From NCBI GenBank assembly GCA_965603825.1, contig CBFDEM010000060.1, positions 1 through 64,000 of the forward strand: 64,000 nucleotides of DNA, written 5' to 3'. The DNA is from Blepharisma stoltei ATCC 30299. Its lineage: Eukaryota; Protista; Ciliophora. Below the pieces are notes generated by a model that saw only the letters and a list, made by a program, of their open reading frames with translations, was not told where the DNA came from and made no database searches. The first letter of the stretch is position 1. Each line of letters begins with the position of its first letter. This document shows, piece after piece, positions 1 through 64,000 of the stretch. Both the position numbers and the translations under genes were made by a program.

Positions 1-2917
1 TAACACCCTAACACCCTAACACCCTAACACCCCTAACACCCTAACACCCTAACACCCTAACACCCTAACACCCTAACACCCTAACACCCTAACACCCTAA
101 CACCCTAACACCCTAACACCCTAACACCCTAACACCCTAACACCCTAACACCCTAACACCCTAACACCCTAACACCCACCCCTAACACCCTAACACCCTA
201 ACCCAACCCTAACACCCTAACACCCTAACACCCTAACACCCTAACACCCTAACACCCTACACCCTAACACCCTAACACCCTAACACCCTAACACCCTAAC
301 ACCCTAACACCCTAACACCCTAACACCCTAACACCCTAACACCCTAACACCCTAACACCCTAACACCCTAACACCCTAACACCCTAACACCCTAACACCC
401 TAACACCCTAACACCCTAACACCCTAACACCCTAACACCCTAACACCCTAACACCCTAACACCCTAACACCCTAACACCCTAACACCCTAACACCCTAAC
501 ACCCTAACACCCTAACACCCTAACACCCTAACACCCTAACACCCTAACACCCTAACACCCTAACACCCTAACACCCTAACACCCTAACACCCTAACACCC
601 TAACACCCTAACACCCTAACACCCTAACACCCTAACACCCTAACACCCTAACACCCTAACACCCTAACACCCTAACACCCTAACACCCTAACACCCTAAC
701 ACCCTAACACCCTAACACCCTAACACCCTAACACCCTAACACCCTAACACCCTAACACCCTAACACCCTAACACCCTAACACCCTAACACCCTAACACCC
801 TAACACCCTAACACCCTAACACCCTAACACCCTAACACCCTAACACCCTAACACCCAACACCCAACACCCTAACACCCTAACACCCTAACACCCTAACAC
901 CCTAACACCCTAACACCCTAACACCCTAACACCCTAACACCCTAACACCCTAACACCCTAACACCCTAACACCCTAACACCCTAACACCCTAACACCCTA
1001 ACACCCTAACACCCTAACACCCTAACACCCTAACACCCTAACACCCTAACACCCTAACACCCTAACACCCTAACACCCTAACACCCTAACACCCTAACAC
1101 CCTAACACCCTAACACCCTAACACCCTAACACCCTAACACCCTAACACCCTAACACCCTAACACCCTAACACCCTAACACCCTAACACCCTAACACCCTA
1201 ACACCCTAACACCCTAACACCCTAACACCCTAACACCCTAACACCCTAACACCCTAACACCCTAACACCCTAACACCCTAACACCCTAACACCCTAACAC
1301 CCTAACACCCTAACACCCTAACACCCTAACACCCTAACACCCTAACACCCTAACACCCTAACACCCTAACACCCTAACACCCTAACACCCTAACACCCTA
1401 ACACCCTAACACCCTAACACCCTAACACCCTAACACCCTAACACCCTAACACCCTAACACCCTAACACCCTAACACCCTAACACCCTAACACCCTAACAC
1501 CCTAACACCCTAACACCCTAACACCCTAACACCCTAACACCCTAACACCCTAACACCCTAACACCCTAACACCCTAACACCCTAACACCCTAACACCCTA
1601 ACACCCTAACACCCTAACACCCTAACACCCTAACACCCTAACACCCTAACACCCTAACACCCTAACACCCTAACACCCTAACACCCTAACACCCTAACAC
1701 CCTAACACCCTAACACCCTAACACCCTAACACCCTAACACCCTAACACCCTAACACCCTAACACCCTAACACCCTAACACCCTAACACCCTAACACCCTA
1801 ACACCCTAACACCCTAACACCCTAACACCCTAACACCCTAACACCCTAACACCCTAACACCCTAACACCCTAACACCCTAACACCCTAACACCCTAACAC
1901 CCTAACACCCTAACACCCTAACACCCTAACACCCTAACACCCTAACACCCTAACACCCTAACACCCTAACACCCTAACACCCTAACACCCTAACACCCTA
2001 ACACCCTAACACCCTAACACCCTAACACCCTAACACCCTAACACCCTAACACCCTAACACCCTAACACCCTAACACCCTAACACCCTAACACCCTAACAC
2101 CCTAACACCCTAACACCCTAACACCCTAACACCCTAACACCCTAACACCCTAACACCCTAACACCCTAACACCCTAACACCCTAACACCCTAACACCCTA
2201 ACACCCTAACACCCTAACACCCTAACACCCTAACACCCTAACACCCTAACACCCTAACACCCTAACACCCTAACACCCTAACACCCTAACACCCTAACAC
2301 CCTAACACCCTAACACCCTAACACCCTAACACCCTAACACCCTAACACCCTAACACCCTAACACCCTAACACCCTAACACCCTAACACCCTAACACCCTA
2401 ACACCCTAACACCCTAACACCCTAACACCCTAACACCCTAACACCCTAACACCCTAACACCCTAACACCCTAACACCCTAACACCCTAACACCCTAACAC
2501 CCTAACACCCTAACACCCTAACACCCTAACACCCTAACACCCTAACACCCTAACACCCTAACACCCTAACACCCTAACACCCTAACACCCTAACACCCTA
2601 ACACCCTAACACCCTAACACCCTAACACCCTAACACCCTAACACCCTAACACCCTAACACCCTAACACCCTAACACCCTAACACCCTAACACCCTAACAC
2701 CCTAACACCCTAACACCCTAACACCCTAACACCCTAACACCCTAACACCCTAACACCCTAACACCCTAACACCCTAACACCCTAACACCCTAACACCCTA
2801 ACACCCTAACACCCTAACACCCTAACACCCTAACACCCTAACACCCTAACACCCTAACACCCTAACACCCTAACACCCTAACACCCTAACACCCTAACAC
2901 CCTAACACCCTAACACC
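1..2917 (+). repeat. Telomeric tract (CCCTAACA)n, C-rich strand on + (left chromosome end)
   Basis: Near-perfect 8-bp tandem repeat from base 1 to 2917, with a few variant units near 30, 175-260 and 855-865. CCCTAACA is the known telomere repeat of heterotrichs (Stentor, Blepharisma). Confidence 0.98.
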
Positions 2918-3690
2918 AATTCTAGTCTTTATGATCTACCACTAGTGCAAGCTTACCAAGATTATCTCAAAGCTTATCAACTCAAAACATCTCTTTATAA
3001 TATTAAACGAGATTTATTAATTTATAGCACTGAAACTGAAACCAGAGAAGAAACCGAAATCTTATAGACTCCAAGACCACTCGGAGGTAGTTGCATAACT
3101 CAACTTCCAAATGGAAAGCTATTCTGTTTTGGTAATAATGAACGTTTTGATGATGGAAATTCTAGAATGGATGAAATCTGATTTGGTAATAATATACCTT
3201 CTGGAATTTCAGTGTTAATTGATGTAGATGGTGGAGTCGAAGTGCTGCCCTCAGGAACTCCTTGTAATAACTCATCATGCATCTATTTCAACAATAGCAT
3301 CTATTGCTTTTGAGGAAAACGCGGAATACATTCAACTCAATCTAGTAGATTTGATTTGGATTTAAATCGATGAATTAAATTAACTCCAATGCCAAAGCTT
3401 GATTATAGGTGCAGTAGTATAATATTTAATGGAAATATTTTGATTTCTGGATATTGAAATAGAAATCTTTGGTTATACTCAATTGATATTGACTCTTTCT
3501 CGACAATTCCTTATGAGTTTAAAGAGGATAAAAGAAAGATCCTGATAAATGCAGAGAGGCTATATTTGATTGAATGCCCTGGATCAATCTATGAAAGCGA
3601 AGTTGGAAGTTACTCGAATTGGAAATGAGTAGGAAAATCAACAATCGGTAATAAGTGTATTGTTCATATAATAAAGGAGGAATATACATT
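2918..3690 (+). pseudogene. Kelch-like beta-propeller family-1 copy, 5'-truncated by the telomere
   Basis: Reads ...QLPNGKLFCFG...IYFNNSIYCF..RFDLDLNRWIKLTPMP...LYSIDIDSFS, as do the paralogs at 48.9-64 kb. It has no ATG, an in-frame TAG at 3065-3067, and a frameshift near 3655. It ends abruptly at the piggyBac fragment. Confidence 0.85.
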
Positions 3691-36641: not shown

Positions 36642-38210
36642 ATGGGTTGCGTGGATTCAAAACTTTCATGCTCAAGCGTAGAAAGGTCTATAATGAACGC
36701 TGAAGCAGAATTAGGCTATGAGAAGAAGAACTGCTGATATATTGACTTTATTCACAGAAAATACTCAATTGGAGGCTGGGTGAATCATGAACAGTGAAGA
36801 GATATCTCATGCTCCCTTTTAATTCAAACAAAAAACACCTCATCTAATACAAAAATTGAAAGATTTTTTAGCAGCATTGCAAATTTCAATGGAAAACTTC
36901 CTCTCAAATCTTTGCTTATTATTGGCTTTCTCCTCGGTGAAGGGACATATCAGGAAAAATCTCAGCTTTTTTTCGATATTTATGACACAAATAACTCAAA
37001 AATTATTTTTAAATCAGATATTCATGCACTAGTTGAAGAAATGCTCGATATAGCAATTAATAAAATTCCTATCCTTGCATGTAAGCCCCAAGCTTCAAAT
37101 GAAGAAGACTTCCAAAAATACTTGCAAGAACTACATCAATTTAAAGAGGCTGCTCAAGAATTAATTGTAAGGAAATTCATTGGAGCTGACAATTCAGAAC
37201 ATTCAATTACCCTATCAGAATTTCAAGCAAATTTTCAAGATATTTCGACTGCTGAGTTGCTAAGTTCTCATGGATTAAGATCATTTGTGTATAGCCAGAA
37301 ATCTGCCTTGAAGTCAACAAATTTTAAACAAAAAAAGAAAAAATCAAATTTTTTATCGTCTGAAGAAAGTGAAAATGCAGAAATAATTAATGAAGAAACC
37401 GTTGAAAAAACAGAGCAAGAAAGCAATGGCACTACAATAGAAACTGACCGAATTATTTTTGTAAAAAATTTTACAAATCAAATAGTCACCCTGAGCTTAA
37501 AATGTAAAACAAAATCCTCAATGTCCTCGATAGATTTTTTCAGTGAATTAAAATTATATGGGTCTATATGCATTCCAAATCAAAGGGTATTTTTTTATGG
37601 TGGAATCTTGCCTGGAAATAAGACTTCAGCTGATGCATTTATAGTTGATAAAATGGGCTATCTGACAAAACTGGTATCATATCAGCCTACTTGTAAAATT
37701 GATTTGGCTCATTTAAATAATAGTGTCTATGCTTTTGGGGGAGACCCACATATTTCTTGTAGGTATAATTTATCAATGAATAGGTGAGAAAATTGCTCAG
37801 AATTGCCAATTGGGAATTTTGCTAACTCGAATCTCCTAGCTTTTAAGGATAATATTATGCTAACTAGCAAATTCAGTGATAGGTTGTTTTATTTTGATAC
37901 AAATCAAGGCTCTTTCTATGAAATTGTGGGTTTGAAATTGAATGAAAATGCATTAAAATTAATGTTTTCAGTAAAAAATAGAGTTTATATTGCAGAATTG
38001 TCAGGGAATGTATATGAAAGTGAAATTAATGGGTTCTTAGCATGAAAGAATATTGGGAGGATGAAAAAATACGATTTTGATTGTGAAATCGGCTCTTATA
38101 TGGCCATCTATCGGAATAATTTATTTTTCATTAATAAAATCACAGGCAAAAATGAACTGATGGAATTCAAATTGCAAGAAAAGATTTTGAGAAAGATCCG
38201 CACACGATAG
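36642..38210 (+). CDS. N-acylated EF-hand protein fused to a Kelch-like propeller (~522 aa)
   Basis: MGC start; EKSQLFFDIYDTNNSKII (EF-hand-like); C-terminal VFFYGG, NNSVYAFGG, RYNLSMNRW, VYESEI. One frame through four UGAs to TAG 38208. Confidence 0.8.
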
Positions 38211-48944: not shown

Positions 48945-50558
48945 ATGGAGGACAAGAAAATTTTTGAGTCTACCTGCTCGCAGTCAGCATTTCCGAGCTA
49001 TTCCAATGAGTCCATACCAAAACTTATGCAGGCTTATCAAGACTATAAGAACATTTTGGATAAAAAATCAGCACTTTATCTAATAAATTTCGATACATTA
49101 TTTATTTATAGCACTGAGAATGATAGCGAGCAAACCATAATAATAAAAACTCCCGAACCTCAACGCTATAGCACCTGCAGCATATCTCAACTTCCAAACG
49201 GCAATTTATTCTGTTTTGGTAATTATCCAAATTCTTGAGAAGCATTGATAATTGACGAAAAAGGCGAGAGCCAACAACTGCCATCTGGACCACCTCTTAA
49301 ATTTTCATCATCTATACCTCGCATAAAGAATGGTAAATTGTTTATATGTTTGTTTATTAAAATTGATATTATAGCTGTTTGTCTATTGATCAAGTAAATC
49401 ATATAGTCAAATTATAGCTCTGCAAAAGCCTGCTGAATGGCAAATTATTATTTCAATTAAAAATATAATATTTTAAATTATTATGAAAGAGAACTCTTCA
49501 ATGATTCAATGGTTTATATAAAACGCTGCATTTTTTGTTAAAGCTTCTTCAAAGTATAAGCTCTTTTATTTCAGACACATAGTCATGCAGATAAATGCTT
49601 TAGTTTATAATAAGCTTGAAATTAATTAATTAAAGGGCTTTAAAGTATATAGGTTTGAAGCCTCAACTAGCACAAACTGTTTGTCTGAGGAAATTCAGCT
49701 TCAGCTTGGAATAGTAGTCTTCTATAAGGACAGAGCTTACTCAGCGACCTTAAGGATATCAACTGGTTAGAAAGACTCTTCCATCACTTTCCTATTGGCT
49801 GCTATGGAGACGCTGACCAGTACGATACCTCCTAACCGCCCTCCACAATATAATGAAAGCACCCAGGAAAATACGTCACACCTCTAGAGACCGGAGTAAC
49901 TCCCAAAAGCCATATTTGATTCAAGAGTAACCACCAGCTTCGACATAAGGTTAATTTACCATACGGCCACTCAGGCAAGCTATTTAGTCTGCACCTATTT
50001 TAATATAAGAAGATTGAAAGGAAATGTCAAGGGCTCTATATTTATTTCAACAATAACGTCTATTGTTTTGGAGGAGCAGATCCAGACAGTAATCCTTTAA
50101 CTCTATCTAGTAGATTTGATTTGGATACAAAACGATGAATCAAATTAACTCCAATGCCACAAGCTGATGCAAAGTGCAGCAGTATAATATTTGATGGAAA
50201 TATTTTGATTTCTGGGTATATCAATAGAAATCTTTTGTTATATTCAATTGATATTGACTCTTTCTCAATAATTTCTAGTGAGTTTGCAGAGTATAAAAGA
50301 AAGATCCTGGCAAATGCAGAGAGGAGATTGTATTTGATTGAGTCTAAGAATGGATCAATTTATGAGAGCAAAATTGGAAGCTTCATTGATTGGACATGAG
50401 TTGCAGACTCAACAATTGATTTTAATCCTCCTCAAGTATATTGTTTATACAATAAAGGAGCAATATATATCGGGTGCATTGACGAAGATGAAGTCTTATA
50501 CTTCAAGCTTAATCTAGATACAGAAAGGTCGATTGCTTTAGAGAGTATCTACTTTTAA
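48945..50558 (+). CDS. Kelch-like family-1 copy A, interrupted by a 726-bp TA-bounded insert; complete ~295-aa ORF if the insert is excised
   Basis: ATG 48945 to TAA 50556. Deleting 49313-50038 gives KFSSSIYFNNNVYCFGG with no TAA/TAG left in frame. Confidence 0.75.
49313..50040. mobile_element. TA-bounded IES-like insert (726 bp plus one TA) with nested inserts
   Basis: tcTAtacctcg...gggctctaTAtttatttc. Homologous to the 197-bp insert in copy B, plus extra segments of ~115 and ~398 bp. Confidence 0.75.
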
Positions 50559-50795
50559 TAAATTATTTAAGATTTATTTCTTATTTAATATTTAGTATAA
50601 ATAAAAATAAACTTCATTTTAATTTCAAAATAGTTTTTATCTATTGTTTTGCTAATAATTATGAAAATATTTTTAATGATAAGCATGAAGCTCGAATATC
50701 AAAGCTAAAATTTACAATTGAAGAATTTTTTTCTTGCCCCATTTAGAAAGTGATAATTTTGTGGCAAAATGGTTTAGGACCAAATTTATAGAACA

Positions 50796-51738
50796 ATGGT
50801 CCAACCACATCCTTCAATTTCAAAAATCAAACAATGAAATCCAGGAAAAGTACTTTTTAAATCAAGACACATTAAATCAAAAGACAAATTATTTATAAAA
50901 TATAAAAACTCATTAAGTGTAAAAACAGCTCCAAAAAGAACAGAATCGGCTCGATGAAACCTGCAATAATAATTAATCAGCAAATAGTAATTCATGTCTC
51001 CAAAATGACGGTAATCTTGTGTTCTCTTACGAGTTTAGCATTGTTAAGATAGATCTAAAAACCATGAAAACTACTCACAAAAATTTTCCTCAATATCCAG
51101 AATATGGCAAAAGTATATCTATATGTGTAATCACCAATAATAATTTTTTTTGTATTGATTTTGGGAATAGTTTGGCATTTGCACTTAATAAAAGGCTCAA
51201 AATTTTAGGAAGCAAATATATTGGGCCGAGATTATATGGAAGTATCATATATCTCGATAGGCTAATTTATTTATTCGAGAATACAAGTGGTTTCATAACT
51301 ATAGAAACTACGATGTAGATAGGAATAGAGAAAAAAAAAGGCGGATCTATTAAAAAGTATAATTCGATTTTAACAGCTTTTGAGGGAAAAATTATAATTG
51401 CTCCACATGGCAGCGGTAGTGTGAACGCTTTTGACCCTTTTTGTAATAGCGCATCAAAGATATTAAAGCCTCATCCAAATTACGGAGCAATTCTTTTGGC
51501 TGCCAATGATAAATTGTATTGCATTTAATCTGAATATATGCCTATAAGAGTTTTTCCAAGAGACTGCACACAATGGATGTGCATCAGCAAAACTCTTATT
51601 GCAAGAGGAATTTATGGGCTGCCTTTGTATTCATTGTATAATGATTCAGTTTATTTCGTAGTTGTTCCACATTGCATATCATTGTATGAGTTTAATTTGA
51701 AAACCCGGAGCATGACATTTATTGATCACTTACATTAA
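50796..51738 (+). pseudogene. Kelch-like family-2 copy with several frameshifts and stops
   Basis: Colinear with 59691-60644 but carries indels near 50910, 50980, 51310-51360 and 51540, and a TAA at ~51526. Confidence 0.85.
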
Positions 51739-52053
51739 GTTTAATATAGTTAATTAAAAAACTAAGGGTCATTAAATTAATGATATTATAAAAGGCTTTG
51801 GATACGTTGTGAATTTGGTGAAATTCAAGTTTTTGAAAGAATTAACTAAAATATGTAGTTATTATATGACTTCTAAATTTTTCGTTGCCAATAACATAAA
51901 ATTAATTCCGCTTAATTTTATATCTTTTATCAATTTTTTTAGTCAAAATTTTGTATTTGCATCAAATTATGGCTCTTTAAAAATTTAAGATAAATATGAC
52001 TGAGAGTTTTAGATTGCTGTAATTAGCTATTAAGCCATCATTATAATACATAT

Positions 52054-52917
52054 ATGGGTAATAAGCAATCAAAAAAGCCAGGCCGTAGGCGTGCAAAAAT
52101 GCTGACTCCAGAACTTATGCAGCCTTACTACAACATAACTGATACTTACTATCAAAATAAATCACTTTATTTAATTGATAATGAGGACAACAAGACTAAT
52201 TTATTGATTTATAACACTGAGAGTGATACCAAAGAAAAAAAAGTTATAAAAACTCGATATCCGCTAGACTGGGGCACATGCATAGCTCAGCTTCCAAATG
52301 GTAAATTATTTTGTTATGGTAGAAGAGATCCACTTTCTGGGATCACGCTCATTGTTGATGAAAATGGTGAAATCGAGAAACTGCCATATGGATGGCATTG
52401 CTCCTTTTCTTCAGCTATCTATTACAACAACAGCGTCTATTGCTTTGGAGGGTTTGATTATAATCAACTTTTCTTAAAATATTCCAATAGATTTGATTTG
52501 GTTCAAAAAAGATGAATCACATTAAATGATATTCCAAAAGCTGATGCATCTTGCACTGGCATAGCATTTAAAGGGAATATTTTGATTACTGGACATTGAA
52601 ATACATATCTTTTGTTGTATTCGATTGATATTAACTCTTTCTCTAAAATTCCTTTTGACTACCCAAAAATGGAAAATAAGATCCTGGTAAATGCAGGAAG
52701 GAGATTGTTTTTGATTGGAAGATTAGTGATTTATGAGAGCGATACTGAAAGATACACTCATTGGAGATGAATTACTAGAGCATCAGCTGGTTTTGATTTT
52801 CATCAAGTTAACTCTACATATTGTTCAGGAGCAATATATACAGGGTATATAACTACGAAAAAAAACTTCTACTTCAAGTTTAACCTGGACGAAAAAAGGA
52901 TAACTGAACTCCTTTAA
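52054..52917 (+). CDS. Kelch-like family-1 protein, intact (~287 aa), MGNKQS myristoylation-like start
   Basis: Open through three UGAs to TAA 52915. Carries the empty site SSAIYYNN with a single TA. Confidence 0.85.
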
Positions 52918-53247
52918 CTTAGATAAATATAAATTATTAAGAGAAATAAATTAAGAGATATTATTTCATATCCTAACTAATTGAATTTATTACTTCCAAA
53001 CTGTGCTTCATAAGCACCAACAGCTCATAAGCCTACTTTGATGAGATTTAAGTAATGGGGAGAATATTTAGCATTTGAATATTATGCATAGCTTAATGCT
53101 AAAATGCTAATATATAAGTATTTATATAGTGTCTAATTAAGCACTTATGGGCTATTAAAATTTGCTCTTTCTAAAAATGACGTAGAGAAATCAAAAATAA
53201 GCATAGATGTAATTTAGCCTTTTATAAATAATCGCTATAATAAACTT

Positions 53248-54335
53248 ATGGAGGACAAACAAATTTTTGAGCCAGCCTGCTCGCAGCCAGCATTTCAGAG
53301 CTATCCCAATGAGTCCATACCAAAACTTATGCAGGCTTATCAAGACTATTAGAACATTTTTGAGAAAAAATCAGCACTTTATCTAATAAGTGACGATAAG
53401 TTATTTATTTATAGCACTGAGAATGATAGCGAGCAAACCATAATAATAAAAACTCCCGAACCTCAACGCTATAGCACCTGCAGCATATCTCAACTTCCAA
53501 ACGGCAATTTATTCTGTTTTGGTAATTATCCAAATTCTTGAGAAGTATTGATAATTGACGAAAATGGTGAAGTCCAACAGCTGCCATCTGGATCACCTCT
53601 TAAATTTTCATCAGCTATGCATTTTCTAAAGCATGGTTAAATTGTTTGAATGCTTGCTTTAAGAATTGATATTTACCAAATAAATCATATAAGATGCTGC
53701 ATTTTTTGTTAAAACTTCTTCAAAGTATAAGGTCTCTTATTGCAGACACATTAGTCATGCAGATAAATGCTTTAGTTTGTAAGAAGCTAGAAAGGAAATG
53801 TCAAGGGCTCTATATTTATTTCAACAATAACGTCTATTGTTTTGGAGGAGCAGATCCAGACAGTAATCCTTTAACTCTATCTAGTAGATTTGATTTGGAT
53901 ACAAAACGATGAATCAAATTAACTCCAATGCCACAGGCTGATTCACGGTGCAGCAGTGTAATATTTGATGATATATTTTGATTTCTGGGTATATCAATAG
54001 AAATCTTTTGTTATATTCAATTGATATTGACTCTTTCTCAATAATTTCTAGTGCATTTACAAAGTATAAAAGAAAGATCCTGGTAAATGCAGAGAGGAGA
54101 TTGTATTTGATTGAGTCTAAGAATGGATCAATTTATGAGAGCAAAATTGGAAGCCTCATTGATTGGACACAAATTGCAAACTCAATAATTGATTTTAATC
54201 CTTCTCAAGTATATTGTTTATACAATAAAGGAGCAATATATATCGGGTGCATTGACGAAGATGATGCCTTATATATACTTCAAGCTTAATCTAGATACAA
54301 AAAAGTCTATTGCTTTAGAGAGTATCTATTTTTAA
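53248..54335 (+). pseudogene. Kelch-like family-1 copy B (recent duplicate of A) with a 197-bp TA-bounded insert
   Basis: Highly similar to copy A. In-frame TAG at 53350, frameshifts near 53970 and 54272. Confidence 0.85.
53616..53814. mobile_element. TA-bounded IES-like insert (197 bp plus one TA)
   Basis: gcTAtgcatttt...gggctctaTAtttatttc. Removal gives TCA GCT ATT TAT TTC AAC (SAIYFN). Confidence 0.8.
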
Positions 54336-54647
54336 TAAATTATTAAGATTTATTTCTTATTTAATATTCAGGATTAAATCGCTTGAGGTAAATGAGAGTA
54401 TGAAGGATGATTACGCCAACAAATATTAAATATTCGAAAAACTGGCTTTGGGGACTTTTTTGTCAGGAACTTACTAAATTAGTTTGCAAAGCATCTATTA
54501 GCATTTACAGCGTCGATATACAAAATAGATAAATTAAATTATTTGGATTAAATAGCATCAGTTTGGTGTCGGCAAAGAAACTTACAGCCAAAAATTGGTA
54601 ATTTATATTATAATTACGCTTTATAAATCAATTATTATAATAAATAT

Positions 54648-55523
54648 ATGGAGAACAACCAACACCCCTTGCTTTTAACATATCAGAATGACCCAAACAA
54701 TCATTCTTCAAAGCTTCCACAAGATTATCAAAACTCTGCTGATACTTATAATCAAAATAAGTCGCTTTATTTAATAAATATAGTGAAGAGCAAAACTAAT
54801 TTATTGATTTATAAAACTGAGAATGGTAGAAAAGAAAGGAAAATTTTGAACACTCCAGAACTACTAGACTATGGAACATGCATAACTCTGCTTCCTAATG
54901 GAAAATTATTTTGCTATGGTAATATTCCCTCATCAAATTCTGGGATCACACTAACCATTGATAAAAATTTCGAAATCCATCAACTGCCATCTGGACCACC
55001 TTGTGGGTTGTCTTCAGGTATCTATTTCAGTAACAGTATCTATTGCTTTGGAGGATTTAATCAAAGCGATCCGAATTTTATTATATCTTGAAGATTTGAT
55101 TTGAATGAAAATCGATGAATCAAATTAATGCCAATGCCAAAAGCGGATAACCTTTGCGCTGGCGTCGTATTTAATAGGAATATTTTGATTTCTGGATTTC
55201 ATGAAAAAAATCTTTTGCTGTATTCAATTGATATTGACTCTTTTTCTAGAATTCCTTATAAGTTTTCAGAGTTCGATTTAAAAATCTTGATAAAAGATGA
55301 AAGAAGATTGTATTTGATTGGAAGAAAATTAATTTATGAGAGTGACATTGAAAGCTACACTGCTTGGAGTCAAATTGGCTATTCAAGAGTCATTAATGAT
55401 CCTAGTCAATTTTATTTAGCATACAATTTAGGAACAATATATATAGGGTGCAATTATTCACTTCAGAGCAGATACTTCAAATTTAGCCTGAAAGAGAAAA
55501 AAATAACCGAGCTCTTTAAATAA
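54648..55523 (+). CDS. Kelch-like family-1 protein, intact (~291 aa)
   Basis: Two supplied ORFs in one frame, joined by UGAs at 55089 and 55116. Empty site SSGIYFSN. Confidence 0.85.
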
Positions 55524-56082
55524 ATTCACTTTTTAATAAAATTGTTTGGGAGTCCTAAAATAATCCAATCATTTATATCTATTTATTGCTTTAGAGGGTT
55601 TTCTCCAAATTAAAATTTTTAGCTCTATCTCTTAGATTTGATTAAAATGATAATTGATGAATAAAATAACTCCAATGCCACAAGCGGATTCCCGTAGCAA
55701 TAGTGTAATATTTAATTGAAATATTTGGTTTTAGTTATTATAAAATAAACTTTTTGTTATATTTAACTGATATTGACTCTTTCTCAGCAATCCCTTATAA
55801 AATGGGATTTAAGTACTGGAAAGATAATAATTAGCAATTTTATGTAGGCTAGCTTAATGATTATGCTGCCTTTGTGTAATTGAGAAGGCTCCCTTATTAC
55901 CCTGTCACATTTAGTTGATGCTGCATAATATATTAAGTCTATCACATAGATAAATGTTTTTTCCTTAGATTTAATCTCAGAAACCCAAAAAGCAAAGCGT
56001 TTAATCAACATAAAGTGCTTTATTTTATATATTTTAGGAGTTTTGCTTTAATAAATAAAGGTCATTAATAATATATAAAACA

Positions 56083-57040
56083 ATGGGCCGATCAAACCCT
56101 TCAATTTCAAAATTCGAACAATGAATCCAGGAAAGGTACTTTTTAAATCAAGGCACATTAAATCAAAAGACAAATTCTTTATAAATATAAGAAACCAATT
56201 AAACGTCAAAACAGCTCCAAAAAGAACAGAACCGACTCGATGAAGCCTGCAATAATAATTAAATCAGCAAATAGTAATCCATGTCTCCAAAATGACGGTA
56301 ATCTTGTATTCTCTTACTACTTTGACATTGCTAAGATAAATCTAAAAACTATGTTCACAACTCCCAAAAATTTCCCTCAACGTCCAGAATTCGACAAAAG
56401 TATATCTATATGTGCAATTCCCAATAATAATTTTTTTTGCATTGATTTTGGGAATAGCTTGGCATTTATTATTGATAAAAGCCTCGAAATCTCAGAAACC
56501 AAACATATCAAGCCAAAAAATTACGGTAGTATGATATATCTTGATGGGCTAATTTATTTATTTGCGATCAAGCCTGGTCTAAGGACAATAGAAACATATG
56601 ATTTAAATAGAAATAGATGAAAACAAGCTGCATCTATTAAAATACGTGATCCATATTATGATTCGATTTTAGCATCTTTCGAAGGAAAAATTATAATTGC
56701 TCCAAATGGCAGCGGTAGTGTGAAGGCTTTTGACCCTTTTTGTAACAGTGCATCAAAGATATTAAAGCTTAAACCAAATTACGGAGCAATTCTTTTGGCT
56801 GCGAATGATAAATTGTATTGCATTCAATCTGAAGGGTATGCTTATGAGAGTTTGCCAAGAGACTGCACACAATGGATGTGCATCAGCAAAACTCTTATTT
56901 CAAGAGGAATTTATGGGCTGCTTATGTATTCATTGTATAATGATTCAATTTATTTCGTAGTTGTTTCACATTACATATCATTGTATGAGTTTAATTTGAA
57001 AACCGGAGCATGAAATTTATTGATCACTTATATAAAGATA
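56083..57040 (+). pseudogene. Kelch-like family-2 copy with three single-base homopolymer deletions
   Basis: MGRSNPSISK start. 1-nt losses near 56124, 56184 and 57003 relative to 59691-60644. These may be sequencing errors. Confidence 0.7.
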
Positions 57041-57868
57041 AATATAGTTGATAAAAATTAAGGGTCATTAAATTAGTATAATTTTAGAGAGGAGATCTTT
57101 CTAATTCGACTATATTTTGTTCATACAGATTGAACTTGAAGAAGTCTAGCATGCTTGACTTAATGCTTCCTATATAGGGTGCAATTATTAACTTGAGAGC
57201 AGATACTTCAAATTTAGTCTGGAAGAGAAAAAAAATAACCGAGCTCTTTTAAATAAATTCACTTTTTAATAAAATTGTTTGGGAGTCCTAAAATAATCCA
57301 ATCATTTATAAAAGCTACAAGAAGCTTGAAGGAAGCATCGGTAGCACTGTATTTATTTCAACAGATGCCTATTGTTTTAGAGGGTTTTCTCCAAATAATA
57401 ATTTCTTAGCTCTATCTCTTAGATTTGATTAGGATGGAAATCATGAATAAAATTAACCCCAATGCCACAAGCGGATTTCCGTAAGAATTATTTAATATTT
57501 AATTGAAATACTTGATTTCTAATTATTATAAAAGAAACCTTTTATTATGTTCAATTGGTATTGACTCTTTCTCAACAATCCCTTATAAAATGGGATTTAA
57601 GCATTGGAGAGATAATGATTAGCAATTTTATGTAGGCTAGCTTAATGATTATGCTGCCTTTGTGCAATTAAGAAGGCTTTCCTTATTACCCTGTCACATT
57701 TAGTTGATACTGCATAATATATTAAGTCTATCACATAGATAAATGTCTTTTCCTTAGATTTAATGTCAGATACTCAAATAGAAAACATTTAATCATCATA
57801 TAGTGTATTATTTATATATTTTAGGAATATTGTTTAATAAATAAAGGTCATTAATAATATATAAAACA

Positions 57869-58824
57869 ATGGGCCGATCAAACCCTTCAATTTTAAAGAT
57901 CGAACAATGAAATCCAGGAAAGGTGCTTTTTAAATCAAGGCACATTAAATCAAAAGACAAATTCTTTATAAAATATAAGAAACCCATTAAACGTCAAAAC
58001 AGCTCCAAAAAGAACAGAATCGACTCGGTGAAGCCTGCAATAATAATTAAATCAGCAAATAGTAATCCATGTCTCCAAAATAACGGTAATCTTGTATTCT
58101 CTTACTGGTTTAGCATTGTTAAGATAGATCTAAAAACCATGAAAACTACTCACAAAAATTTCCCTCAACGTCCAGAATTCGACAAAAGTATATCTATATG
58201 TGCAATTCCCAATAATAATTTTTTTGCATTGATTTCGGGAATAGCTTGGCATTTATTATTGATAAAAGCCTCGAAATCTCAGAAATCAAACGTATCAAGC
58301 CAAGAAAATACGGTAGTATGATATATCTTGATGGGCTAATTTATTTATTCGCGATGAAACCTGGTCTAAGAACAATAGAAATATATGATTTAAATAGAAA
58401 TAGATGAAAACAAGCTGCATCTATTAAAATACGTGATCCATATTATGATTCGATTTTAGCAGCTTTCGAAGGAAAAATTATAATTGCTCCACATGGCAGC
58501 AGTAGTGTGAAGGCTTTTGACCCTTTTTGTAACAGTGCATCAAAGATATTAAAGCTTAAACCAAATTACGGAACATTTCTTTTGGCTGCGAATGATAAAT
58601 TGTATTGCATTCAACCTGAAGGGTATGCTTATGAGAGTTTGCCAAGAGACTGCACACAATGGATGTGCATCAGCAAAACTATTATTGCAAAGGGAATTTA
58701 TGGGCTTCCTATGTATTCATTGTATAATGATTCAATTTATTTTGTAGGTGTTCCACATTGCATATCATTGTATGAGTTTAATTTGAAAACCCGGAGCATG
58801 ACATTTATTGATCACTTATATTAA
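57869..58824 (+). pseudogene. Kelch-like family-2 copy with one frameshift in a poly-T run
   Basis: T7 instead of T8 near 58220, otherwise intact. May be a sequencing error. Confidence 0.65.
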
Positions 58825-59690
58825 GTTAATAGCAAAATAAGGGTCATTAAATTAGTAATATTATAAAAACTCTGGATAGATTGTAAATTTTGTGAAATAA
58901 TTGAGCCTTATAACTTTCAAACTGTGCTGCATAAGCGCTAAACAGTTGATAAGCTATCTCTTATGAAATTTAAGCACGGGAGAGAATATTTAACAATTTG
59001 TATATCAGGCATAACCAATGCTTATTCTACCTTTGTGATGTTGAGAATAGAGAACTTGCAAATATGATCAAAAACCTTAAAATTCAAAAGCAAATCTTTT
59101 TGCAAAAATGGAAATGTGCAAAAATTAAATGCAAATTCGCAAAAATTTTTTTAATGGTATGTGTTTAATCTGCTCTCAATCTAAGCATTGCCCTTAATTT
59201 TTCCGCCAAGCGCTTGATTTTCTTTTTCTCGCTTTCAATGCATAATCCACACCTATGCCCTTGAAAAGAGTGATTCTTGCCTTTTCTCAAATGTGCCCCA
59301 CAGAGATTTCCATTCAGTAAGAGTTTTAGGCGTCTAAATGTCTATCTTCAAGTTTCAGTTCAAATTTATTATTTATCTTTATATTATCTTCAAATTTAGC
59401 TTAAAATTCATATTTATTTTCAGATTAATCTTCATATGCATTTTCATGTCCTTCTTATATATGCCTCTATACACATCTTCATATGAATCTATATATGCAT
59501 CCTCGTATTCGTAGTTATCTGCATGCCTATAATAGTAGCCAGGTTTGAGATTGTAGCACATCATGGTCCCCACTGTACCGGTGCGTAATCTGAAGCTTTA
59601 GCAAGCGTTCAATCATCATAAAGTTCATTAATTTTTATATTTTAGAAATATTGCTTTAATAACTAAAGGTCATTAATAGTATATAAAACA

Positions 59691-60644
59691 ATGGGCCGAC
59701 CACGTCCTTCAATTTCAAAAATCAAACAATGAAATCCAGGAAAGGTGCTTTTTAAATCAAGGCACATTAAATCAAAAGACAAATTCTTTATAAAATATAA
59801 GAAACCCATTAAACGTCAAAACAGTTCAAAAAAAAACAGAATCGACTCGGTGAAGCCTGCAATAATAATTAAATCAGCAAATAGTAATCCATGTCTCCAA
59901 AATAACGGTAATCTTGTATTCTCTTACTGGTTTAGCATTGTTAAGATAGATCTAAAAACCATGGAAACTACTCACAAAAATTTCCCTCAACATCCAGAGC
60001 TCAACAAAAGTATATCTATATGTGCAATTCCCAATAATAATTTTTTTTGCATTGATTTCGGGAATAGCTCGACATTTATCATTGACAAAAGCCTCGAAAT
60101 TTCAGAAGCCAAACGTATCGAGCCAAGAAAATACGGTAGTATGATATATCTTGATGGGCTAATTTATTTATTCGCGATCAAGCCTGGTCTAAGGACAATA
60201 GAAACATATGATTTAAATAGAAATAGATGAAAACAAGCTGCATCTATTAAAATACGTGATCCATATTATGATTCGATTTTAGCAGCTTTCGAAGGAAAAA
60301 TTATAATTGCTCCACATGGCAGCAGTAGTGTGAAGGCTTTTGACCCTTTTTGTAACAGCGCATCAAAGATATTAAAGCTCAAACCAAATTACGGAACATT
60401 TCTTTTGGCTGCGAATGATAAATTGTATTGCATTCAATCTGAAGGGTATGCTTATGAGAGTTTGCCAAGAGACTGCACACAATGGATGTGCATCAGCAAA
60501 ACTCTTATTGCAAGAATTTATGGGCTGCCTATGTATTCATTGTATAATGATTCAATTTATTTTGTAGGTGTTCCACATTGCATATCATTGTATGAGTTTA
60601 ATTTGAAAACCCGGAGCATGACATTTATTGATCACTTATATTAA
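59691..60644 (+). CDS. Kelch-like family-2 protein, intact (~317 aa)
   Basis: ATG 59691 open through UGAs at 59730 and 60228 to TAA 60642. YLDGLIYLF...ETYDLNRNRW is a degenerate Kelch blade. Confidence 0.85.
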
Positions 60645-61091
60645 GTTAATAGCAAAATAAGGGTCATTAAATTAGTAATATTATAAAAACTCTGGATAGA
60701 TTGTGAATTTTGTGAAATTCAAATTTTTGAAAGAATTAACTAAAATGTGTAATTATTATATGACTTCTAATAAGTGGCTTTTTGTATATGAAAGACTTAA
60801 TAGATGACGCAGCTTCACCTAAATGTAGCAAGGTTCAAAGGGTAAGATTTCTCAACTATACAGTGGTAGCATAAGTATTAAACTAGTCTGGTATGAAAAT
60901 TGCTGATTATGATCCCCTAAACGTTTAAATTCCATTTAATAATCATTGGTTTATTACTGTTTGAGATTTATGCTGAACAGCGTGAAACTAAATAAATTTT
61001 AATTAATCAATCACTTCTTAAAAGAATTTGCAATCTTATAACATTAATGAGCAGCATAATATCAATAATCTATTAGATGCCTTAAATTTCT

Positions 61092-62089
61092 TTAAATATA
61101 GATTCTGGTTATCTTTTTCTCTTTCAGGCTAGACTTGAAGACCTGGTAAATTTCAATATGATTGCACCCGATATATATTGTTCCTGACTTATACAAGCAA
61201 AACGCTTGATAAACATCAAAAGAGCATGTTGTCTTGGAAATTGGGCTCCAAACAGTGTAGTTTTCAATTTCACTTTCATAAATGAGTCCATTGAAGCATT
61301 CAAACAAATAAAATCTTCTTTCTGCATTTGCAAGTACCTTAGTTTTATACGGTGCAAAATCATAAGGAATCGTAGAGAAAGCGTTAGTATCAATTGAATA
61401 CAACAAAAGATTTCCGTGAAAATTTCCAGAAATCAAAATATTCCTATTAAATATTACACTTTTACAAAAATAATCCTGTTTTGGCATTGGAGCTATTTTA
61501 ATTCATCGATTTCTTTCCAAATCAAAACTATGAGATACTGCTAAAATCCTATAACGTTTATCGGTTCCTCCAAAGCAGTAAATATAATTGTTGAAATAGA
61601 TATAGTGCCCTTTTAAATTCCTTCAAACACAACTTTTAACCCCTTAAAAGTATAATAGCTTCAATAAAGAAGTATTTGGTTTGCAGAAGCTTGAAGAAAA
61701 GATTCAATTGTCTATAGCTGAAGAAGATATACAAGCTGGTCCAGATGGCAATTCTAGTACTCCACCATTCTCATCAATTATCAAGGCTATCCCAGTAGGT
61801 GGATAAGTTCCACCAAAGCAGAATAATTTACCATTTGGAAGTTGAGCTATGCATGTGGTACAGCCTAATATTTCTGAAGTCTTCAAAATTTTTGTTTCTT
61901 TACAATTACTCACAGTATTATAATGAATAATCTGCTTTCTTCGTTCTTTTTTACTATTGAATAAAGTGATTCTCCTTGGTTATTAGTGATCTCGTAGTTT
62001 TTATTATCCTGCATAAGTTTGGGAATATGCTTACTAGAAACGTTCTGACAGGTCGTGCATTCTGGCTTTAAACATAAATTGTCCCCCAT
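61092..62089 (-). pseudogene. Kelch-like family-1 copy C (inverted) with a 114-bp TA-bounded insert and one frameshift
   Basis: ATG 62089, 1-nt deletion near 61925. The insert sits at SSA^IYFNN. Confidence 0.82.
61601..61716. mobile_element. TA-bounded IES-like insert (114 bp plus one TA) with TATAG terminal inverted repeat
   Basis: + strand reads TATAGtgccc...tgtCTATA. Removal restores TCA GCT ATC TAT TTC AAC on the minus strand. Confidence 0.82.
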
Positions 62090-62532
62090 GTAATTATTAT
62101 TATGATTGATTTATAAAGACTAAATTATGCTATTATAAGGGTATTAATGTACCTAGCAGTAAGCTCTTCAATAATTCTAAATAGCATTAGAGATAACGTT
62201 TAATCTGAATATATGCAAAAAGAACCCAAAAAGTCGATAATCTATTTGTATTTGAGCCCCTTACTTTTAGTATAGGGTAACTTCACATTTCCAGGATTTA
62301 CAATTTCCCTCGTTTTGAAAGCCATGTGAAATTTAATTTTAGCTTAGACTTGAACTAACAAAGTCTACTATCTCAGCTTTCCTGATAATTTCCATTATAA
62401 ATTCTCTTGCCTAGCCTCTTCTAACTCTACTCAGTCTTTCAGCATCTGTACATTTTTGCTGTCCAAACTATATTATCAGCATAAAGAAGGGCTCAGGTGA
62501 ATCCCTAGTTTTAGTTCTTCATTTCTTCACGA

Positions 62533-63406: not shown

Positions 63407-64000
63407 ATGGAGTATCAGCAATATTTAAAACCAGACTGCATGGAATATCAAAATGATTCTAGTAAGCATGTTCCAAAACTTATGCAGACCTATCAAAACT
63501 ATGCTAGCACTCTCAACCAAGGCGATTCGCTTTATTTAATAGATAGATGAAACAATAGAACGAATTTATTGGTTTATAACACTGTGAGCGATAGCAAGCA
63601 AACTAAAATTTTGAAGACTCCAGAACCGCTTGACTGTAATACATGCATAGCTCAACTACCAAATGGTAAATTATTCTGCTATGGTAAGAATTTTCCAATT
63701 TCTGGCATCACATTGATAATTGATGAGAATGGAGGAGTACAAAAACTGCCATCTGGAGTGTCTTGCTATTGGTCGTCAGCTATCTATTTCAACAACAATG
63801 TCTATTGTTTTGGAGGAATAGGTCGGCATATGAACGCTTTAGCTCTATCTCGTAGATTTGATTTGGATAGGAATCGATGGGTCGAATTAGCTTCAATGCC
63901 ACAAGCTGATTGCAGTTGCAGTAGTGTAATATTTAATGGGAATATTTTGATATCTGGGAGCTGCTATAGATCTCTTTTGTTGTACTCAATTGATATTGAC
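63407..64000 (+). CDS. Kelch-like family-1 protein, intact so far, runs off the window
   Basis: ATG 63407, one UGA. CIAQLPNGKLFCYG, empty site SSAIYFNNNVYCFGG, RFDLDRNRW. Confidence 0.85.

Follow-up and report, generated by a model that had tools for sequence, protein, structure and literature searches.

Interrupted copies in a Kelch gene cluster

We analyzed a window of 64,000 nucleotides (nt), positions 1 to 64,000 of contig CBFDEM010000060.1 (C60 below; assembly GCA_965603825.1) of the ciliate Blepharisma stoltei ATCC 30299. In this window, copies of a Kelch-motif gene family are interrupted at one identical codon by TA-bounded, homologous inserts that resemble internal eliminated sequences (IESs). 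The initial annotation had taken the window for somatic DNA. This view is upheld by about 2.9 kb of CCCTAACA telomere repeat at the left end (positions 1-2920) and by the assembly that holds the contig, whose 41.46 Mb in 64 contigs are consistent with the published somatic, or macronuclear (MAC), genome of this strain. The genes of the window are open only when TGA is translated as Trp, and from 49 kb onward two gene families, interleaved and rich in fragments, form a tandem cluster.

Of 495 candidates in the genome, at least 153 match the Kelch-motif family. Its relatives in public databases are named "Kelch motif family protein [Blepharisma stoltei]", and the family is very large and apparently restricted to Blepharisma. 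Full-length members score above the Pfam gathering cut-offs for Kelch_6 (29.8, cut-off 25.3), Kelch_4 (29.1, cut-off 21.6) and Kelch_1 (28.2, cut-off 20.1); pieces from the window itself have marginal scores. Only one repeat is recognizable by sequence, and the start of the Pfam Kelch motif coincides exactly with the insert site. The interrupted copies A, B and C and the intact paralogs P1, P2 and P3 are arranged as follows.

48945..49312, + strand: copy A, N-terminal half; 122 codons, open with TGA as Trp
49313..50040, + strand: insert A; 726 nt plus the second TA; modules m1 (about 86 nt) and m2 (115 nt); core split by m4 (398 nt)
50041..50555, + strand: copy A, C-terminal half; frame open through to the stop codon
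52054..52914, + strand: intact paralog P1; empty site at 52416/52417
53248..54300, + strand: copy B, pseudogene with insert; in-frame TAG, 1-nt and 4-nt frameshifts
53616..53814, + strand: insert B; 197 nt plus the second TA; m1 and core
54648..55520, + strand: intact paralog P2; empty site at 55019/55020
61095..62110, - strand: copy C, pseudogene with insert; one N-terminal frameshift
61601..61716, - strand: insert C; 114 nt plus the second TA; matches the A/B core along its length
63407..64000, + strand: intact paralog P3, running off the window; empty site at 63781/63782

To place the inserts we combined direct reading with tblastn searches using the two halves of the intact paralog P2. The halves of copy A were searched separately and were joined, insert-free, only for alignments and trees. 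In A, B and C the added bases fall exactly at the boundary of residues 124 and 125 of P2 (SS(A/S/G) / IYFNN), with zero residues left unaligned. Each of these inserts starts with TAT and ends with CTATA, and thus carries TA at both ends. Excising the insert together with one TA gives TCT/GCT-ATT/ATC-TAT-TTC, which is the junction of the uninterrupted copies.

The same junction was found in about 45 other family copies in 42 loci, where base-by-base inspection detected 0 extra bases at the insert site. Among 150 scored matches genome-wide, which as listed do not include B, only A and C break at this site, and all others that span it are free of additional DNA. These results confirm the account given by the initial annotation of three inserts at one codon, with their coordinates and lengths, and of an intact junction restored by removal with one TA. 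Its description of copy A as otherwise open, and of B (TAG and two frameshifts) and C (one frameshift) as bearing further lesions, was equally accurate. A search of public proteins with the 52-residue open reading frame (ORF) that spans the left junction of A gave no match, the query itself included.

One possibility for these observations is that the insert is removed from RNA as a non-canonical intron, and the sole argument for it is that removal restores the frame. However, none of the three possible registers (beginning TA, AT or TA and ending TA, AT or TA) has GT...AG or AT...AC boundaries, and the intact paralogs have no intron at the site. The introns of B. stoltei are tiny, about 15-16 nt, quite unlike segments of 114-726 nt. 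We therefore give this explanation almost no weight.

Homology and modular structure of the inserts

The initial annotation had regarded the 3' ends of the three inserts as homologous, and this was borne out. The 19-mer AAGGGCNCTATATNTATTT at the 3' end occurs with zero mismatches only at A, B and C in 41.5 Mb, which is far beyond chance; the 3' ends take the form AAGGAA...GGGCNCTATA. Homology also extends inward. With its last 25 nt removed, the interior of C matched A (p 0.0005) and B (p 0.0025) in shuffle tests, and insert C is the counterpart of a core in A and B that measures about 130 nt. The core distance is 0.07 between A and B and 0.44-0.51 for A-C and B-C, so that the divergence of the insert core follows that of the genes (coding dS, the synonymous divergence, 0.057 for A-B and 0.745 for A-C).

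Outside this core, the longer inserts A and B carry additional modules:

49406..49520, + strand: m2; 115 nt, in A and not in B; direct repeat ATATA/TATA on its flanks
49608..50005, + strand: m4; 398 nt, in A only; higher G+C; 14-nt imperfect direct repeat starting TAA
53616-53681, + strand: m1 of insert B; 66 nt, TA-bounded
53682-53814, + strand: core of insert B; follows m1

The 14-nt repeat that flanks m4 is present as a single copy in B. A duplication of this length suggests a retroelement-type insertion of m4 in A or a deletion between the repeats in B. The m1 module of insert B also contains (53620-53668) a 14-nt imperfect inverted repeat, 79% complementary, with 21 nt between the arms; it is not terminal.

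We found no further copies of the inserts in the MAC assembly: insert A has no copy there apart from B, and m4 has no other copy. Insert A with its flanks had no Rfam match, and within the inserts there is no ORF of 70 codons or more on the gene strand. Inverted repeats of at least 8 nt that link the two termini of an insert are absent; only TATAG (5 nt) is shared between the ends, in C. We considered m4 as a BogoMITE or BstTc1 element and rejected both, as it has no C-rich terminal inverted repeats. We also looked for further carriers with the 3'-end pattern, allowing two or fewer mismatches. The 25 further matches were rejected as chance, since a control gave 15 and the sole match in a family gene lies away from the insert site.

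A fourth carrier and its empty duplicates

A shorter insert was found in a fourth copy, D, which has relatives with an empty site. Relative E lies on the same contig at about 70.2 kb.

57309..57351, + strand: insert D; 41 nt and TA; bounded by TATA...TGTA; homologous to inserts A, B and C at their 3' end
57352..57592, + strand: D, 5'-truncated C-half fragment with frameshifts and stop codons
55576..55911, + strand: D', 5'-truncated C-half fragment, tandem duplicate of D; empty at the junction 55575/55576
C60 about 70243: E, an older relative of D; empty at the same junction
55521-55911, 57171-57700 and locus L077 6130-6330 (C60 about 70.1-70.3 kb): recurring composite layout

Like A, B and C, D has TA at both ends. 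D and D' are recent tandem duplicates with flanks that are 86-100% identical, and the 41 nt are missing from D' at the insert junction, in an alignment that is slightly ambiguous (an extra 12-nt gap). The length of E is exactly that expected after TA-to-TA removal. All four carriers lie inside one 13-kb tandem cluster.

The surroundings of D follow a layout that recurs three times: a full gene, a flank of about 55 nt, and a 5'-truncated C-half that begins about 30 nt before the insert site. This recurrence points to the duplication of a composite unit.

Phylogeny and selection on the carriers

In a tree of 47 full-length copies, A and B are sisters and group at 100/99 support with two insert-free copies of the same contig, S1 and S2.

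C60 68852/68853: empty site of S1, insert-free, open frame of 304 codons
C60 about 67011-67015: empty site of S2, insert-free

C falls outside the (A,B,S1,S2) group, and zero bootstrap trees united A, B and C in a single clade. The ratio of nonsynonymous to synonymous divergence (dN/dS) on the path from A to C was 0.515 (bootstrap confidence interval 0.35-0.74), and 0 of 1000 bootstraps reached 1. With the same estimator, intact pairs gave 0.38-0.73 and the pairs expected to be neutral gave 0.97 (A-B) and 1.04 (S1-S2). The 79 family-conserved residues are kept to 90% in A, 91% in B and 82% in C, as in intact copies; after drift since the common ancestor, a rough expectation would be that fewer than half were kept. 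As dN/dS for A-C is well below 1 and the conserved residues are retained, neutral decay since the common ancestor is ruled out. The coding sequence along the A-C path was under purifying selection with the insert in place. Since the split of A and B, change has been neutral, with 11 nonsynonymous and 1 synonymous changes on the A lineage and 8 and 0 on the B lineage.

These data bear on the possibility that the insert is an ordinary fixed insertion that arose in one ancestral pseudogene, was later duplicated with it, and has been present in both nuclei without ever being removed. The presence of the inserts in the MAC assembly and the abundance of pseudogene fragments in the cluster are as this explanation would have it. 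A single clade of A, B and C is also compatible with the approximately unbiased (AU) test (p 0.154), so that bootstrap support is what speaks for non-monophyly of the three. On the other hand, an ancestral pseudogene does not accord with the A-C dN/dS or with the conserved residues kept, and S1, S2, D' and E are precisely without the insert. We consider a fixed insertion of this kind quite improbable.

Another possibility is that the insert was never an inherited IES. A mobile element that targets TA could have hit the conserved motif of several paralogs separately, or one insertion could have spread to neighbors by gene conversion in the tandem array, each event killing its host. In keeping with this, all carriers lie within 13 kb, against more than 150 insert-free copies elsewhere; the DNA of the target motif TCATCAGCTATCTATTTCAAC hardly varies; and the carriers have few lesions, as would be the case for recent deaths. 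However, the MAC holds no other copy of the element, which also lacks terminal inverted repeats. The inserts of A/B and C are as divergent (0.44-0.51) as their genes, which means that any transfer would be old, yet C still keeps 82% of its conserved residues. The 41-nt remnant in D beside a precisely empty D' is also hard to make by insertion. This explanation is therefore unlikely in our view.

A third alternative is that the inserts are IESs that still function and are partly excised. The MAC would then be mixed, the assembler would have taken the retained form, and retention might vary by clone or condition and so affect which paralogs can be expressed. According to the B. stoltei germline genome paper, excision is a continuum, and IESs that are retained in part are hidden in assemblies. 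The frame of copy A is open to the left and right of its insert, and the germline forms of B and C may be longer than those in the MAC, if inner TA-bounded modules were excised. Against this, A and B have diverged neutrally (dN/dS 0.97, with the 11:1 ratio on the A lineage), and B, C and D carry lesions at other places as well. We regard partial excision as doubtful. The initial annotation had gone further and suggested a DNA-splicing on/off switch for a variable gene family. This found no support: A has been neutral since its split from the pseudogene B, and the four carriers sit in one pseudogene-rich cluster.

A probable old IES retained in decaying paralogs

Published data on B. stoltei allow the inserts to be compared with its IESs. 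The germline genome contains about 40,000 IESs, of which three quarters are TA-bound and 70% are intragenic; some are nested and some are partly excised (PMC9942856). The commonest direct repeats at their boundaries are TA, TAT and TATA (PMC9942856). A TA-containing direct repeat is present at both boundaries of the inserts in A, B, C and D. The lengths of 114, 197 and 726 nt are inside the published range, and the inserts are non-coding (no ORF of 70 codons or more on the gene strand, no Rfam match) and compatible with selection on the host gene (A-C dN/dS 0.515).

We favor, with moderate confidence, the reading that one old TA-bounded IES was inherited through gene duplication and is now retained in the MAC in dead or dying Kelch paralogs. 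It is the best fit to the indirect evidence because the insert is as old as the A-C split, with the host genes under selection, because it is precisely missing from sister copies and from a near-identical duplicate, and because it has grown by TA-bounded modules, all of which would be expected of a TA-bounded IES. The position and boundaries of the inserts, their homology, their placement in the tree, the pattern of selection and the filled and empty sites are direct observations. The initial annotation had proposed that an ancestral IES was amplified with the gene family and lost its excision, in full or in part, in some copies. The homologous inserts, the place of A and B beside insert-free sisters, the purifying selection between A and C, the filled and empty duplicates and the TA-bounded modules all speak for the core of that proposal; past excision, the reason for retention and a germline IES at the empty sites are what we infer.

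Under this reading, a non-coding, TA-bounded germline IES would have been present, in one sub-lineage of the family, at the first codon of the recognizable Kelch repeat. For most of its history it would have been cut out precisely during macronuclear development, presumably by a PiggyMac-type excisase, and precise excision would have left selection on the host genes in force and the interior of the IES free to drift. In the line of A and B it would have gained more modules, with TA or TAA at their borders. Removal would no longer, or not fully, take place in four copies of the cluster, and the IES would for this reason appear in the MAC reference. These carriers would be dead or dying, B, C and D having further lesions and A being open but drifting neutrally. 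Either failure of excision killed the copies, or the decay of redundant copies relaxed the pressure for excision. It is plausible that protection of DNA already in the MAC, mediated by maternal small RNAs, could then fix the retention.

Several points weigh against the reading of an old, retained IES. First, all four inserts sit in the MAC reference. Because they belong to the 41.46-Mb, 64-contig MAC assembly, the absence from the MAC that defines an IES does not hold for them today. Second, the 41 nt of D are below the published minimum IES length (first size peak 65 bp); being under the smallest published size class, the insert of D may be too short for excision. Third, the ends are little help. 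In reverse complement the right ends read TATAG, the left ends are variable, and the published consensus of Blepharisma IES ends is so weak (TAT rrn tttt, or TATAg...) that it provides no real test of the inserts (PMC9942856). Fourth, all carriers lie within 13 kb, which is compatible with old gene conversion, and the AU test fails to reject A, B and C as one clade (p 0.154). Finally, TA conservation at the empty sites gives no information. We considered it as a sign of a hidden IES and rejected it because synonymous sites are equally conserved over the whole gene and because seven copies deviate: in the Ala sub-clade T is the last base of the codon preceding each empty site, and seven Cys-clade copies have CA instead.

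The presence of the inserts in the MAC reference could in principle be an assembly artefact, with germline reads or a rare retained haplotype built into the contig, and the region is indeed repetitive and tandemly duplicated. This is very unlikely, however, for four separate loci with different insert lengths, on a main contig capped by telomere repeats. Ordinary B. stoltei IESs have a residual retention of 0.02 or less in MAC-enriched DNA (PMC9942856), which is too low to win an assembly consensus.

A variant of the IES reading, to which we assign a low probability, is that the same ancestral IES is present in the germline copies of many family members and that near-identical copies (D versus D', and A/B versus S1/S2) differ greatly in how efficiently it is excised. 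The short forms of B and C in the MAC could then be what is left once the inner TA-bounded modules have been excised. If so, the family would be a natural series for studying the cis-requirements of excision in Blepharisma, for example minimum length and end sequence. If retention were in addition inherited through the maternal MAC, it would amount to clonally variable silencing at the DNA level in a variable gene family.

If the reading that we favor is correct, the locus would be a clear heterotrich case of an IES that was duplicated with genes and then turned somatic in decaying paralogs, a life cycle so far documented mainly in Paramecium. Filled and empty sites only a few percent apart would help to ask which features allow an IES to be excised in Blepharisma. 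These data leave the present view of ciliate genome editing unchanged, contain no pointer to a regulatory role and would represent a known kind of ciliate event.

Other members of the family in and around the window

Further family members were observed outside the copies discussed above. A Kelch-family copy with an in-frame TAG in its N-terminal part lies almost directly after the telomere repeat (window 2882-3652), and the genome-wide matches include many more copies that are no more than a few kb away from a contig end. A more distant member, with 32% identity to P2, stands alone at 37542-38057, outside the tandem cluster.

The second family of the cluster encodes proteins of about 300 amino acids and is a distant relative of the first (25% identity to P2). 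Its copies, interleaved with the Kelch genes, include intact as well as frameshifted ones (50977-51729, 56162-57058, 57845-58821 and 59667-60641). The cluster looks like a repeated unit containing one copy of each of the two families.

Among intact members of the Kelch family (loci L004-L033 and L063-L074), pairwise dN/dS is high, 0.38-0.73, yet synonymous sites are strongly conserved in conserved columns. The family may be young and fast-evolving, or it may be homogenized by gene conversion.

Comparison with known systems

A close parallel is provided by the ohnologous and co-orthologous IESs of Paramecium (Arnaiz et al. 2012, PMC3464196; Sellis et al. 2021, PMC8354472). There, IESs occur at the same position in paralogs with interiors that cannot be aligned, and precise germline losses, recruitment of IESs into exons, and losses linked to pseudogenes have been described (PMC3464196, PMC8354472). 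Like the Kelch inserts, these IESs are TA-bounded, share an identical codon position in paralogs, have interiors that diverged like neutral DNA, and are precisely lost from some copies; recruitment into MAC sequence or pseudogene-linked loss is a further likeness, as is the tendency of older IESs to be shorter. They differ in that the Blepharisma inserts are known from a somatic assembly alone, their germline presence and excision being inferred. In addition, the Blepharisma host is a tandem multigene family with hundreds of copies rather than the pairs left by whole-genome duplication, and the species is a heterotrich.

The published IESs of B. stoltei (Seah et al. 2023, PMC9942856, and its preprint) share with the inserts the TA, TAT or TATA boundary repeats, an intragenic location, lengths in the same range, and nested elements in the longer IESs. 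Its authors also describe partial excision, and duplicated retrotransposon copies in which homologous IESs occupy the same place (PMC9942856). Published B. stoltei IESs are germline-limited, with a MAC retention of 0.02 or less, whereas the Kelch inserts are present in the MAC reference. The insert of D falls short of the smallest size class published (about 65 bp), and the inserts show no similarity to the C-rich inverted repeats at the termini of BogoMITE and BstTc1.

Miniature inverted-repeat transposable elements of the Tc1/mariner type also have TA on both sides, and their removal with one TA restores the host sequence. In contrast to them, the Kelch inserts lack terminal inverted repeats of at least 8 nt and have no dispersed copies in the MAC, and the homologous inserts share one site in diverged paralogs.

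Finally, IESs can act as gene switches, as for the Paramecium mating-type gene mtA, whose promoter is excised as an IES (PMC8354472). As in that system, retention or excision of a segment would set whether a Kelch gene can be expressed. The Kelch carriers, however, are neutral or broken, with no sign of function and no alternative states observed.

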